Origin: Lepidodermella squamata
Taxonomy: Eukaryota > Animalia > Gastrotricha
Length of the DNA stretch: 64,000 nt
Reading direction: 5' to 3'
NCBI GenBank assembly: GCA_047495785.1
Contig: JBLDXI010000024.1
Coordinates: 620,001-684,000 of the forward strand
Below are positions 36,821 through 49,390 of this stretch, in pieces. The notes beneath the pieces are model-generated. The model worked only from the letters and a program-made list of their open reading frames with translations. It was not told where the DNA came from and did no database searches. Within the stretch, counting starts at the first letter, position 1. The number at the start of each line of letters is the position of its first letter. A program made the position numbers and the translations under genes.

Positions 36821-37187
36821 TCATGGGGACTCCCCGTGCAGCATATTTCTAGCCAAATCTTTCGCCCAGAGATAAAAGGCTCCAGGATTCCTGCAAATGT
36901 GAGATCCAAAATGCCGAATGCACTTTTCCATTCGACGTTGTACAGCAAACTCGGCGATTCTTTGCATCCATTCCGGGTTTATTGATGCAACTTGATAACA
37001 GAAATGACAAATTTTAAAGATATCACGGTTGATTTAAAAGGGTCTTCATACCATGAGTTAGTTGGTCACTTGAATCTGGCCGCTTGTCATCGTTATGTGC
37101 GGATTCTTTGTCATCAGTTGTAAATGCTCCCGTGCATAGGAAAAATGCTGCGAATTCAAAGATAAGCAGCCATAATTTTAATCGCAT
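36821..37187 (-). CDS. Secreted prepropeptide, uncharacterised family, copy A (101 aa)
   Basis: Exons 37187-37052 and 36990-36821: MRLKLWLLIFEFAAFFLCTGA-FTTDDKESAHNDDKRPDSSDQLTHVASINPEWMQRIAEFAVQ-RR-MEKCIRHFGSHICRNPGAFYLWAKDLARNMLHGESP*. AATAAA at 36750-36745. Confidence 0.85.
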
Positions 37188-37264
37188 CGTGGTTTTGAAA
37201 TGAATTCCTTCGCCAATGCGGTTGACAGCCGAAGGTAGGTATTTATGGTGTCCATGAGATGCAA

Positions 37265-37767
37265 ATTGCCATTATTAAGGTCGATTATTTAAGAGCTGCG
37301 TGGGCTCATCGACAGCAATCAGTACCAACCAACGCATCTCGCGAATCGCTGTGCGTGATTTTATTGCAATCGAGTGATTAATGCAAATTTACCAGGGTGA
37401 CGCAAAATAATATACTATCAACATGGGTAGGCGATGCGGAAAATTCGTAGCTATGTCAGATGAAACAAAAATCACATGGTTCATTAATAGGTACCCCCAC
37501 TCATTTTAGCTACGTCCAGATATTATGTCCTTTGTTCTCGACTGAGCCAAAATGTAAAAAGCACTTCTATTTTGACAAATCGCCATTTAACCACATTCTC
37601 GCAAACGTTTCTCTAATCGCCGTTTCTAGATTCGGACACAATTTGAGGATAAAATGCGTTAGGCAGGCTTTAACCTGTAATTCTTACTGCGATGACAATC
37701 ATACATTATTTGGGCCAGAAATAAGAACGGATCTTTTCACTACTCGCTTCGCCTGAGCCATTATGCC
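37265..37767. repeat. Diverged direct repeat, copy 1 (partner 47603-48175)
   Basis: Shared blocks such as GAGCTGCGTGGG, GTCAGATGAAACAAAAA, AAATGTAAAAAGCAC and TCTAATCGCCGTTTCTAGATTCGGA. Confidence 0.9.
37506..37767 (-). pseudogene. Pseudogenised copy of prepropeptide B
   Basis: Paralogous to 47812-48175. Signal peptide is missing, exon 2 is reduced to 12 nt (37686-37675), there is a premature TAA at 37589-37587, and the first Cys is replaced (KRRLEKRLRECG*MAICQNRSAFYILAQSRTKDIISGRS*). Confidence 0.85.
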
Positions 37768-37928
37768 ATTTCAAGCTCAGCATTTCGCTGCTTCCCTGGC
37801 GAATGAGCGAGCCTATCAAAAATAGCTCTTTTCCCAAAATTAAAAGTCACCAATAAATTGAGCGGGAAAAATTCATCGCTTTATTGTAAATATTATTAAT
37901 AAAATAGCCGGATATTTTACGACTTCAG

Positions 37929-39798
37929 TTACTCGTCAATACTCAAAATTGCGTCGATTCGTTTGTAAAAACGGTCTCTTTCAACAGTCGTTTTCTCAAG
38001 AGATGTCGCATTGTTTTGATCTGTCAGATAATTCCCTGCCAGATTTCTCAGAAAGTTTCGCAGCTCATACCGGCGATCTAAAAGATTAGACGGTCATCAT
38101 GAAAAAATTGAATTAATAAATTATTAACAACCTGCTATCTTCGCGACAAGAGGTGTTTCACTGCTTTCTCTAGCCAACGAAACCGAAGACATGGAGAACA
38201 AAATTTCAACCGCCTCGAAAACCGCGAGTAGTCTATCGATTCCTCTAGGTATTTCGTTGGTCAACAACGAATCTAGCACAGCAGGGCACAAATTTTGACT
38301 AGCCGGGCATATCGCGACAAAAATACACAGCAAACTCTGACCGACAGGGTGCAACGGAGTTGGATCCGAGGAACTTGCCATCGAAGTATTCATATTAGCA
38401 GGATTTGTAGAACCCAACGACGCAACTTTCGCAACTCGGGCGCATCGAACTGAAAATTGGCGAAAAGGCGCCAGGAGGCGATTTGCAGTCAGCGATGATT
38501 GAGAAATTAGTTGCCTTAATAAACCAGCTAGGGTCGTGAGAGCGGTCTAAAAATGTCATATAAAATTGAAATCCATCCTAAAAACAATTTTATACCTCAA
38601 AATGCTGCTTCCTCTGAAGTCGCTCTTCCACCGCAAGATTTGACTTTTCAGTGACGATTTTCGAAAATATGAAAATTGTAGAGACAAACGAGACGATAGT
38701 TGAAGCACTTGATTCCGAACTTGGGCCATTGAGCGCCAGAAGCATTATTAGCGATGCGTGATACCATCGAATCGTTCGCAGTAAAAGAAAATCCAAATTT
38801 GACCCAAAATGTTTGCATTGAATCCAACTTTCTGTCACGCTTTGACAAGCCCATAGAAAACTATGGAGTGGCAAAGCTGAAAAATATATCATTTCAATGT
38901 CATGTGATAGGATTTTGCTCTTAACTAACCAAAAGGGTCTAGGGAGAATAAAATTGAGCAAGCACTCTGCGCTGGAAATATTTCCATGTCATAAAAAATC
39001 GAGGTTGACTTGTTTTCACCAAGTAGCATCTGATCGAGAATGAAAACAATCCGCTGAATTTCACTGATTTTCTTCATCAAATCAGACAGCGAATCTATGA
39101 TTCTCAGCCTCAGCTGAAGATTCGAGAAAGATCTACACGCCGAAATAAAATTCGAAAACGGCCCTTTTGACAACTCATTTATCATGTGATTGATTGAAAG
39201 GCCAGGTCCACTGCTTTCGATACGATTTGCGACTTCAATCACCAGACCTCGTAAGTAAATGTTGAACAACTCGTCCGAATTCGGTGAAGTCAGCGCTGGT
39301 AATAGAAGTCTCGCTTGAGAGTTGGGATCTTCAAAGCAGTTCAACAAAGAAATTGCCACGCATCGATAAGTTGCATGGCTCCAATCGATCGAAGAAACAT
39401 GATGCTGCCCGGTCAGTGCGATTGCAACGTAAGGGTAGGGTTGTAATCGCGAAAAATAATCGACTAAATCTCGGATAAAACGTTTCGCTAGTTTCCGCCT
39501 ACGATAAGCTGATAAAGTCGGTTTTGCGCCATACGCGAAATCATCATCATATCGAACCAAAGTTTCGCCAATTATCTGTTATTGCAAAATCAAGATGATT
39601 CATGTTAAAATTTTCGTTTATTACGGTGCTATTTATGCATTTGTGCCAATCTGATTCGGTGAAGCCAAAATTCCGAACAAAACTTTGGACTGGGTCCTTT
39701 TTCGCCGAACAGTTACTGATTGAAGTTCGAAGGGCTGAACTCAAGCCATTTGAAGAAACCGCATTTTTATACGGAGTCTTCACCCGCGGAGTCGCCAT
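37929..39798 (-). CDS. Divergent FANCC-like alpha-helical protein (~554 aa)
   Basis: Five exons (39798-39625, 39575-38930, 38876-38596, 38546-38132, 38077-37929) splice in frame. Motifs VQSFVRNFGFTESDW, FPAQSACSILFSLDPFALP, ESWIQCKHFG, LIMLLALNGP and SLLCIFVAICP match FANCC segments in the same order (from memory). Confidence 0.55.
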
Positions 39799-39848
39799 AA
39801 ATGATTAAAAACACCTACAATTTTATTGAAATCATGCAATCACAATTG

Positions 39849-47602: not shown

Positions 47603-48175
47603 ATTGCCATTTTAAGGTGAATTGATTTAGGAGCTGCGTGGGTGGATTGACAGCAATTTTTACCGAGCAATCACGCAAATCGGTGCGAGTCATTTTATTT
47701 TTATAAATCAGGGTGACACTATTCTATCAGCATAGGTGGCGCTGAACTTTTTTATCCTCGTCAGATGAAACAAAAAATCACATCGTTTAATTAATCGGTA
47801 CCCCATTCATTTCAGCTACGTCCAGACATGATGTCCTTTGCTCTTGACTGGGCCCAAATGTAAAAAGCACTCCTATTTTGACAAATCGACATCGAACCGA
47901 ATTCTCGCAAGCATTTTTCTAATCGCCGTTTCTAGATTCGGAGAAAATAAGATGATGAAAAAATATGTTATACAGGCTTCAACCTGTAATTGTTGTTGAA
48001 TTTCCTCCATCAATTGGTCGGCTTCCGCGTCATTTCCGCCGTTAGCTTGGGATCGCAGCAAAAGCTTCAGAATTCTTTCTGCCAATTAAAGATGAAAATC
48101 ATGTGAAGTTGAATCATTTGACCTAAAATTACTAACGGATTTTTTCACTGTTTGCTTCGGTTGAGCCGTTTTGCC
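47603..48175. repeat. Diverged direct repeat, copy 2 (contains most of prepropeptide B and its 3'UTR)
   Basis: Aligns by eye to 37265-37767. Confidence 0.9.
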
Positions 48176-48257
48176 CGTCAACCAGCGGGTTGGCAAATAC
48201 TTGAATTTGAATGCTACCTAATACCAGAGCCAAGTAAAGCAATGCAAATTTGTCCAT
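47812..48257 (-). CDS. Secreted prepropeptide, uncharacterised family, copy B (111 aa)
   Basis: Exons 48257-48137, 48078-47984 and 47931-47812: MDKFALLYLALVLGSIQIQVFA-NPLVDGQNGSTEANSEKIQRILKLLLRSQANGGNDAEADQLMEEIQQQLQ-KRR-LEKCLREFGSMSICQNRSAFYIWAQSRAKDIMSGRS*. Confidence 0.88.
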
Positions 48258-48297
48258 ATTTTTGTCTGCTGAAGCAAAATCCAACTTCAAGAAATAC

Positions 48298-48303
48298 TTT
48301 ATA
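48298..48303 (-). promoter_or_regulatory. TATA box of prepropeptide B
   Basis: TATAAA on the minus strand, an Inr-like TCAGCA about 25 nt downstream, then the ATG. Confidence 0.65.
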
Positions 48304-48954
48304 GGAGAATTGCATCTCCGTTGGGATTTTTATTCAATTTGACCGTGTTATCAAGAATTTACAGCACCCAAATGACGTTCCATTATACGGTAATTTTCAT
48401 TTCTTTTGTCCAATATATTACATTTTCGCGCACTGGAAAAAGTTACCGCCACGCGGTCTGTAATTTTTAGGTGCGTTGCCATGACCATTTACCAGCATAT
48501 TGCGACTGCACGAAATTCGCCCCCGCAGATTGCGGAGACCATCAGATATTCCGGATTGATCCCATGGTAATAATTTGTATCTCACGTGGGCTTCAACTGG
48601 ATCGCTAAAATTAGTCATTTTCGCGTCAAAATATCGACGCTGCCAGAGCGTCATTTATTAATCATTCAACAAAGCACAACTTTTGCTACTTAATTGCAAG
48701 TTCGGATAGTCGTCGATTTTCAGAATTTAACGATAAAAGAAAGATGAAATAATCCCTGCCTCTGGTGAAGTCGAATTGTAACCAGCGATCGGTAGATTTG
48801 AATAGAAATTTTGAAAAATGTATTGATTCAAAATTACAAAGGCTAAAACTCATCAAGAGCGTGAAATAAAAATCCTATGTGAGAGGCGACCAAATATGAC
48901 ATGTTGTAAAAAAATAAAAAATAGAAAAACTGCAGATACTAGGTACAGTCTAAA

Positions 48955-49390
48955 TCATCTAGTCAATTCTCCTCTCATGATTTCCTTGGCCAATGTTTGA
49001 GCCCAAATGTAGAATCCGATGCGGTGGTCGCATATTGCGTAGGATCCCAATGTTTCGATGCATTTCTCCATTCGTCTTTTCAGCAGTTCCAACTGAAGAG
49101 CGGCAGCCAAATTATCTAGCCCTTCAGAGCCTTTTCGTTTCAGAGTCATCGCTACAATTGAACCTGAGGAGAATGATATTGAAATACATTAGCAACTGCG
49201 GTTTGCTGATAAACTTACGTAGACGATCGATACCATGCGGAACCTTCCGCGCCTGAGGTTTGTTGCGGCCATTTGGTAAAACTATGTTATCGTCAGTATT
49301 ATTCCTGAAACTTATTTCGGTGATTGGAGCTGGAGAAACCACAGGGATGAAGGCGATTGCCAGAGACAAGAGTAAATTCAATCTGAGCAT
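48955..49390 (-). CDS. Secreted prepropeptide, uncharacterised family, copy C (126 aa)
   Basis: Exons 49390-49219 and 49163-48955 join two ORF-track fragments: MLRLNLLLSLAIAFIPVVSPA-P...TLKRKGSEGLDNLAAALQLELL-KRR-MEKCIETLGSYAICDHRIGFYIWAQTLAKEIMRGELTR*. Confidence 0.88.

Follow-up and report, generated by a model that had tools for sequence, protein, structure and literature searches.

A large, tandemly expanded family of small two-cysteine proteins, predicted to be secreted, in the gastrotrich Lepidodermella squamata

Three small minus-strand genes in a 64,000-nucleotide stretch of the Lepidodermella squamata genome (the window) belong, as divergent outliers, to a very large gene family that is restricted to the lineage and undescribed to date. 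We judge the chances to be about even that the family encodes intact, folded, cationic secreted proteins, probably serving defense or surface binding. The original prediction had counted three genes and one pseudogene and had interpreted them as convertase-processed precursors; the gene models were upheld, while the family turned out to be about two orders of magnitude larger and the processing to be doubtful. Little work has been done on gastrotrichs, a phylum for which, to our knowledge, there is one long-read genome. Whatever the role of the family, be it defense, surface chemistry, or signaling, it is likely to represent a major lineage-specific innovation.

Rereading of the sequence and spliced translation exactly reproduced the proposed coordinates and C-terminal peptides of the three genes, here termed A, B, and C, and all of their exon junctions are GT..AG. 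Gene A (101 aa; exons 37187-37052 and 36990-36821) has a first exon with the start codon, a signal-like hydrophobic N terminus, and an acidic, probably disordered stretch, ending in phase 1; its donor is GTATGA, and the junction was read from the genomic sequence. The second exon encodes an upstream helix, the basic site QRR, the two-Cys domain, and the stop codon (E = 3.9e-29), and an AATAAA lies about 60 nt downstream. Gene B (111 aa) consists of three exons: the first (48257-48137) carries the start codon and a signal-like N terminus and ends in phase 1, the second (48078-47984) encodes two predicted helices upstream of the basic site, and the third (47931-47812) starts exactly with the KRR codons and encodes the two-Cys domain and stop codon (E = 1.5e-24). 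Its 3' untranslated region (UTR) spans 47811-47680, up to the poly(A) addition site. Gene C (126 aa) comprises an exon with the start codon, a signal-like N terminus, and a variable region, ending in phase 1 (49390-49219), an exon encoding helices, KRR, the two-Cys domain, and the stop codon (49163-48955; E = 1.4e-28; AlphaFold2 pLDDT, 86), and a 3' UTR at 48954-48661. As predicted, each gene contains a phase-1 intron and a dibasic site; gene B has, in addition, a second intron of phase 0 directly before the KRR codons, which the original prediction lacked. The N termini of all three appear signal-like by a hydrophobicity heuristic, with small residues at −3/−1. Similarity among the three genes is far above chance (E = 4e-29 to 1.5e-24).

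Transcript evidence was obtained from contigs of one public run, X1, and covers genes B and C. This run behaves as RNA, because it shows no intron or intergenic cover and because one of its contigs reaches 47680 and then continues into 22 unmatched T (plus strand), corresponding to the poly(A) tail of gene B. Its contigs carry the junctions 47931>47984 and 48078>48137 on the two sides of gene B exon 2, as well as 49163>49219 in gene C, where cover of 48661-49161 is joined to 49217-49294 and transcript cover of exon 1 extends to 49409. Thus, the small genes in the window are real, spliced, and, for B and C, expressed at the RNA level, and their spliced, polyadenylated transcripts agree with stand-alone genes. 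That they are exons of a larger protein was ruled out, as the transcript contigs measure 369 to 579 nt and the domain always lies at the extreme C terminus. The open reading frame track contains only fragments of these genes, as had been noted, which makes it likely that most family members are missed or cut short by gene predictors; the annotation is corrected here in that the fragments belong to spliced genes of a large family.

A profile search of the 121-Mb genome yielded 350 candidates, the best 150 of which all had E values of ≤7e-15, and a codon pattern for FY[ILMF]WA[QK], a motif carried by 62% of the nonredundant members, gave 128 matches versus 3 in the control. On the basis of the profile matches and the codon-pattern count, we estimate about 200 family loci, so the family may be among the largest gene families of this animal. 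Most of the loci sit in tandem arrays, located on contigs C3, C54, C19, C42, C33, C25/26, C29, and C16. The match was free of stop codons in 147 of the best 150 copies, and one of the three exceptions is gene B's own intron boundary. In a maximum-likelihood tree of 54 members, built from few columns, A, B, and C are not grouped with support, and the branch leading to A is long. A library search added 88 clusters; 36 of these were traced, each to a metagenome or Logan contig derived from a related animal. A word-indexed protein search with the full-length profile returned six matches, all from ENA. Judged from these sequences, the family appears to be shared with a related uncultured animal found in environmental metagenomes, and homologs are kept in this relative, whose glucose-6-phosphate dehydrogenase (G6PD) is only 68 to 82% identical.

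The family has no known relatives in Pfam, PDB, fold libraries, the ESM Atlas, or the literature, in line with its having been called uncharacterized. Pfam searches of the C-terminal exons, 53 domain segments, and 53 full-length members gave only scattered chance matches, and a profile search of PDB sequences gave a single match at E = 2.4. Foldseek found nothing in PDB for either of the two models; the best structural Z score in VIA-align wide was 4.3, corresponding to helical noise, with no saposin among the matches. The Atlas fold search retrieved generic bacterial helices only, the ESM Atlas feature search peaked at a noise-level score of 0.80, and a literature search for FY-x-WA hexapeptides revealed no relevant paper.

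Among the members examined, the domain, which holds two Cys, is always C-terminal. Most members have about 80 residues after the signal, with little beyond the domain. In a subfamily of 160 to 270 aa, the N-terminal regions are highly variable and often Pro/Ser/Thr-rich and of low complexity, and extra upstream Cys are added in pairs for a total of four, as a larger fold would be expected to have. Conservation across the family extends to introns and signal-like sequences, and among 90 full-length environmental members, 73 reach a Kyte-Doolittle value of ≥2.0 in a 10-residue window within the first 35 residues. The two Cys are spaced by nine residues in 69 members and by eight in 32. AlphaFold2 modeled a 65-aa piece of gene C with one helix (residues 2 to 35) running through KRR (pLDDT, 91 to 96 over residues 11 to 40); in a full-length member of 103 aa, residues 40 to 103 reached a pLDDT of 92 to 96, and helix 53-76 contains the RR. 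The conserved Arg is therefore predicted to lie mid-helix within a confidently modeled domain some 64 residues long and not in an exposed flexible segment. The median net charge is +5 over the aligned segment of about 63 residues in genome members and +6 over the profile-matched stretch in environmental members, with the positive charge spread over both halves.

In our favored model, a signal peptide would be followed by a variable, often disordered stretch, a domain of about 60 to 65 residues at the extreme C terminus, and a tail that does not exceed about 10 residues. A short and a long helix would form the domain together with a disulfide-closed loop (Cys-x8/9-Cys) and an amphipathic helix bearing FY-x-WA, and the "dibasic site" would be one conserved Arg, often with basic neighbors, in the middle of the long helix. 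Given that placement of the Arg, we read the proteins as secreted, intact, cationic mini-proteins of about 7 to 10 kDa. Secretion and fold are predictions, and action in the uncleaved state is what they suggest. The family would have diversified by tandem duplication under purifying selection, an expansion pattern resembling that of repertoires that meet the outside world, in microbe defense or in the binding of anionic surfaces; charge, fold type, and this pattern are the grounds for our guess at a defense or surface-binding role. Saposin-like proteins (caenopores/NK-lysin) and Hydra arminin-type proteins offer a comparison, being likewise small, secreted, helical, net-positive, disulfide-held, and encoded by many tandem lineage-specific paralogs. 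As in arminin-type and other defense precursors, some family members, including gene A, join an acidic N-terminal part to a cationic C-terminal part. However, saposin-like proteins have six Cys, three disulfides, and five helices, whereas the family would have one disulfide and three or four helices; it shows no sequence or fold match to them, Pfam SapB models included, and its charge is moderate.

Alternatively, it is possible, though in our view doubtful, that the proteins are processed precursors, in which a furin/PC-type convertase cuts after the Arg to release a 36- to 38-residue, disulfide-looped amphipathic peptide, the upstream helix serving as pro-region or folding chaperone and the products forming a ligand or pheromone set or antimicrobials. 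P1 is basic (R/K) in 52/53 genome members and 94/101 environmental members. P1 and P2 are both basic in 34/53 genome members (64%), which carry RR or KR and include A (QRR), B (KRR), and C (KRR), and about three-quarters of the environmental members (75/101) fit either the dibasic rule or the monobasic rule with a basic P4, P6, or P8. The exact coincidence of a gene B exon boundary with KRR would also suit a precursor, as would the charge layout of gene A, which resembles that of many antimicrobial-peptide precursors. On the other hand, P2 is basic in 35/53 genome members and 31/101 environmental members, and the full dibasic pair occurs in only 28 of the latter (28%). The Arg stays where the convertase motif is missing, in members whose P2 is Asp, Ala, or Tyr and whose P4 and P6 are nonbasic (e.g., P0070 and P0074). 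What is conserved thus appears, from the alignments, to be a single Arg before [LMFY]-x-x-Cys, often with basic neighbors, and not a dibasic pair. Furthermore, P1' is Leu, Met, Phe, or Tyr (or Trp) in 52/53 genome and 93/101 environmental members, and Cys occupies P4'; the Devi and Rholam rules disfavor these residues near cleaved sites, a point that we weighted low. The predicted mid-helix position also speaks against cleavage, although AlphaFold2 often draws helices through real precursor cleavage sites. No conserved amidation signal was found in the family members, in which N/Q/E/S follow a C-terminal Gly about as frequently as K/R do. Finally, the peptide released after the Arg would be only weakly cationic (median, +2), and some 200 paralogs are far above any classical neuropeptide family.

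Conservation had been described as limited to what follows the dibasic site; this is true of percent identity among the three genes but not of the family. Sequence identity is concentrated after the Arg, where the dN/dS ratio is 0.12, versus 0.37 upstream (dS about 1; upstream, about 1.1), as a released peptide would predict. Nonetheless, upstream helix positions 4, 12, 15, and 19 are hydrophobic in 75 to 97% of 151 sequences, position 15 is as informative as core positions of the putative mature part, and the whole mature protein is alignable in the intronless genes of the C3 cluster. These data suggest that the upstream helix is under purifying selection and thus that constraint is not limited to the putative released peptide. 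Mutual information with average product correction (APC) in the 151 sequences placed 6 of the 20 top pairs across the upstream and C-terminal helices, which equals the background fraction of 0.33 and is thus uninformative as to contact between these helices. Of the convertase architecture originally proposed, the signal-like N termini stand and an unconstrained upstream region does not; the site is predicted not to be exposed, the dibasic pair occurs in only part of the family, and about 200 tandem paralogs fit this architecture poorly.

Among known convertase-processed precursors, the closest are those of the calcitonin/CGRP/DH31 type and the melanin-concentrating hormone (MCH) type. Shared with these are a signal peptide, basic residue(s) preceding a conserved segment, about 37 residues long, at the precursor end, and one disulfide ring followed by a helix. 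Calcitonin-type peptides have an N-terminal Cys-x(4-5)-Cys ring and a C-terminal amide, and MCH-type peptides have a C-terminal Cys ring with three residues after it. In contrast, the family ring holds eight or nine residues and is followed by a helix of about 20 residues, and there is neither a Pro-amide nor a conserved amidation signal. Unlike in either type, the dibasic site is not conserved, the conserved unit reaches about 25 residues upstream, and the paralogs number about 200. The earlier view that the calcitonin pattern does not match therefore holds, and ring size, tail, and the missing amide rule out a calcitonin- or MCH-like hormone. One Pfam search hit no family of any kind at E values up to 10, and in another no calcitonin-type family was among the matches listed at E values up to 1.

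It is unlikely that the proteins are structural or matrix components whose C-terminal domain anchors variable N termini in cuticle or scales, adhesive-tube secretion, or the egg envelope. A constant C-terminal module with highly variable N termini, most evident in the long subfamily, the many tandem paralogs, and a cationic domain that could bind anionic polysaccharide are all consistent with such a role; most members, however, have little beyond the domain, and repeats, Gly/Tyr-rich or chitin-binding motifs, and Pfam matches are absent.

Quite unlikely, too, is a gastrotrich-specific, hyperdiversified ligand system in which each of about 200 genes yields a distinct 36- to 38-residue peptide for communication or neuroendocrine control, with expanded receptors; if real, it would be a peptide repertoire without counterpart in other animals. 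Euplotes Er pheromones and Aplysia attractin are comparable as secreted helical mini-proteins of about 40 to 70 residues with a disulfide-fixed fold and fast family diversification. Yet three disulfides and a small number of genes per genome set these apart, and they share no sequence or fold similarity with the family. A set of about 200 tandem paralogs is also unlike a classical hormone. Of the hormone, pheromone, or defense system first envisaged, a new hormone seems less likely than a diversified secreted-protein repertoire, and defense is retained as a guess. The domain, at about 64 residues, is small enough to be made and tested directly.

That the sequences are functionless, as open reading frames of a repeated element or chance transcribed frames, is extremely improbable: high copy number and one decayed copy in the window would fit, but dN/dS is 0.12 to 0.37 at a dS of about 1, nearly all of the best copies are stop-free, introns and signal-like sequences have been conserved, the transcripts undergo splicing and polyadenylation, and homologs persist in the relative described above. 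The decayed copy is the single pseudogene that had been reported, at 37685-37265 on the minus strand, and it was confirmed as a DNA-level copy of gene B that takes in the 3' UTR, exon 3, intron 2, and the last part of exon 2, at 75.6% identity over 427 alignment columns. Its domain remnant, at 37631-37509, contains one TAG and one TAA, and its lesions include replacement of the first Cys by Arg, an in-frame stop, and replacement of Trp by Leu.

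Spliced translation of the minus strand of the window yielded complete reading frames for all three predicted small secreted-protein genes, with exons joined at GT..AG in each: gene A (37187-37052 and 36990-36821; 101 aa), gene B (48257-48137, 48078-47984, and 47931-47812; 111 aa), and gene C (49390-49219 and 49163-48955; 126 aa). The products matched letter for letter the three C-terminal peptides of the original prediction. Their N termini are hydrophobic, with small residues at the would-be signal peptidase cut, and a phase-1 intron is present in every gene. Gene B carries an extra phase-0 intron (47931/47984) immediately ahead of the KRR codons, unlike the other family members examined, in which the upstream helix and the C-terminal two-Cys helical part (the domain) lie within a single exon.

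A public sequencing run from 2015 (X1) behaves as RNA: exons and UTRs are covered, while introns and the intergenic gap at 48270-48604 are bare. One X1 contig ends at 47680 with 22 unmatched T on the plus strand, marking the polyadenylated end of a transcript from the minus strand, and X1 contigs carry the anticipated splice junctions of genes B and C (47931>47984, 48078>48137, and 49163>49219) exactly. Thus, B and C are expressed as short, independent, spliced, and polyadenylated transcripts. That they might be exons of something larger is ruled out by the same transcript contigs. In the 369-nt X1 contig of gene B, the 5′-most 47 letters remained unaligned to the genome, although about 21 nt would suffice from the contig match to the ATG (48236-48257 and upstream); these letters could reflect allelic divergence or a trans-spliced leader. 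Separately, over 47600-49600 the DNA run X2 departs from the window by about 1.5% substitutions and small indels (e.g., an extra CTG after 48688 and a 5-nt deletion at 48911), and hence represents a different haplotype or strain of this species.

The predicted pseudogene was also borne out. The minus-strand stretch at 37265-37685 is a 75.6% DNA copy of the 3′ UTR, last exon, second intron, and end of exon 2 of gene B, in which the first Cys has become Arg, Trp has become Leu, and an in-frame stop has been gained. A profile search of the own genome also flagged 37509-37631, with one TAG and one TAA. Retention of the second (phase-0) intron of gene B shows that the copy arose by genomic duplication rather than retroposition.

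The three genes and one pseudogene originally proposed are a small fraction of the family. When a profile built from the domains of A, B, and C was run on the assembly that contains the window (121.2 Mb in 151 contigs, translated in six frames), 316 candidates gave at least 150 scored matches (E of 4e-29 to 2e-9 among those listed). A second profile, from an alignment of 53 non-redundant genome members (A2), gave at least 150 matches, all of those listed at E <= 7e-15, from 350 candidates; a stop codon fell inside 3 of the 150 listed matches, one of them at gene B's own intron boundary. In an independent count, an 18-nt codon pattern for FY[ILMF]WA[QK] occurred 128 times in the assembly versus 3 times for the reversed control, and because this motif is present in 62% of non-redundant members, about 200 loci are implied, a count possibly somewhat inflated by uncollapsed contig pairs. 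Identical E-values and scores were seen on such pairs (C25:2198214 and C26:481079; C25:2024023 and C26:289044; also C43 versus C103), which may be uncollapsed haplotypes (haplotigs) or very recent segmental duplicates. Tandem arrays hold most loci, on contigs C3 (0.91-0.95 Mb), C54 (2.02-2.07 Mb), C19, C42, C33, C25/C26, C29, and C16. Some loci were found by the codon pattern and are absent from the profile matches listed (C24:842129-847569, C24:1635057, C24:2095206, C24:2504048, C16:683391-697267, and C42:3296808-3328841), including additional copies on the window's own contig. The tree scatters A, B, and C across the family on long branches, with no supported clade uniting them.

Beyond this genome, in a profile search that exhaustively covered 1.84 billion representatives, 88 proteins reached E <= 1e-3 and 34 of these also E <= 1e-10; nearly all are 80-200 aa long with the domain C-terminal. 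The source was looked up for 36 clusters, and all 36 came from ENA metagenome assemblies or Logan contigs. The relatives' contigs are metazoan, with INTS1, RPS2, G6PD, M13 peptidase, and C-type lectin aboard, and they too carry small tandem groups of the family. Their G6PD and RPS2 are 68-82% and 88% identical, respectively, to those of the window's genome, indicating that the environmental members come from a related but different animal. No known family was matched in Pfam, PDB sequence, Foldseek, VIA-align, or Atlas fold and feature searches, a literature motif search gave no relevant match, and the Lepidodermella squamata genome paper does not mention gene families (PMC11660948). One protein from the representatives search, P0012 (769 aa), has 13 tandem repeats in partial agreement with profile positions 18-45 (K-R-V-E-R-C...C), and its C terminus resembles a p53-type DNA-binding domain; the repeats probably match without being related to the family.

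The domain (consensus R-[LM]-x-K-C-x3-[LF]-x-S-x2-I-C-x5-F-Y-x-W-A-x3-A-x2-I-M-x-G) always forms the very C terminus, followed by no more than 10 residues except in one truncated copy at a locus edge, and its Cys, Ser, Cys, Phe, Trp, and Ala are invariant or nearly so. In many members, the gene lacks introns and encodes 102-104 aa, and the mature part can be aligned over its full length. Median net charge is +5 over the ~63-residue A2 segments of the genome set and +6 over the profile-matched stretches of the environmental set, reaching at least +4 in 78-85% of members; it is divided between the upstream helix (+3) and the part after the conserved Arg (+2). With roughly even confidence, we read the family as a repertoire particular to this lineage, made up of small, secreted, cationic helical proteins with a single disulfide that function without cleavage. 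The expansion pattern and charge suggest that these proteins could serve in defense or in binding to anionic surfaces.

The original prediction confined conservation to the segment after a dibasic site, a limit that holds for percent identity among A, B, and C but not for the family. Hydrophobic residues occupy profile positions 4, 12, 15, and 19 in 90, 85, 97, and 75% of 151 aligned sequences, a spacing that, judged from the alignment, would be that of a buried helix face; at 2.07 bits, position 15 is as informative as positions 28 or 49, which lie in the presumed mature peptide. At dS ~1, eight C3-cluster paralogues without introns showed dN/dS values of 0.24 in the signal, 0.37 between the signal and the conserved Arg, and 0.12 beyond it. 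Sequence ahead of this Arg is thus not free to vary. AlphaFold2 with A2 modeled a 65-residue piece of gene C at a mean pLDDT of 86, with a helix at 2-35 that spans KRR, followed by helices at 38-42 (short) and 44-59. For a full-length intronless member of 103 aa (alignment A3), it left residues 1-39 unconfident and placed 40-103 at pLDDT 92-96, with predicted helices at 40-49, 53-76 (RR inside), 79-82, and 90-100.

That a convertase releases the 36-38-mer is a possible but distinctly less probable explanation. It accords with the highest identity lying after P1, the conserved Arg before [LMFY]-x-x-Cys, and with P1 being almost always basic: this position, four residues before the first Cys, holds R in 47 of the 53 non-redundant genome members, K in another 5, and N in the last one, and R/K in 94 of 101 environmental members. 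At the preceding residue (P2), 35 genome members have R/K and 13 have Q; among environmental members P2 is basic in 31/101, the remainder having Q, A, C, E, I, F, D, or Y. The following residue (P1′) is M/L/F/Y/W in 52/53 and L/M/F/Y in 93/101, respectively. Proteins from the representatives search such as P0070 and P0074 retain the P1 Arg even though P2 is Asp and neither P4 nor P6 is basic. These data indicate that the conserved element is a single Arg ahead of a hydrophobic residue, rather than a dibasic site, a pair found in 28/101 environmental members. Under the Devi and Rholam rules, an aliphatic residue at P1′ and a nearby Cys are disfavored.

In a longer subfamily (160-270 aa), the N-terminal stretches are rich in Pro, Ser, and Thr, and an additional two Cys lie upstream. 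We consider a matrix or assembly role, which would suit these variable stretches, improbable for the family. A classical single hormone system is unlikely because there are about 200 paralogues.

Within the window, ORFs 45877-46677 and 38925-39560 had no Pfam match. The neighbors of A, B, and C are ordinary eukaryotic genes, encoding glutaminyl-tRNA synthetase (GlnRS; 25516-27222, minus strand), a LIM protein (32247-33305, plus), an ankyrin-repeat plus LRR protein (39849-44271, minus), a bHLH factor (52877-54067, plus), and a DnaJ protein (58284-58928, minus).
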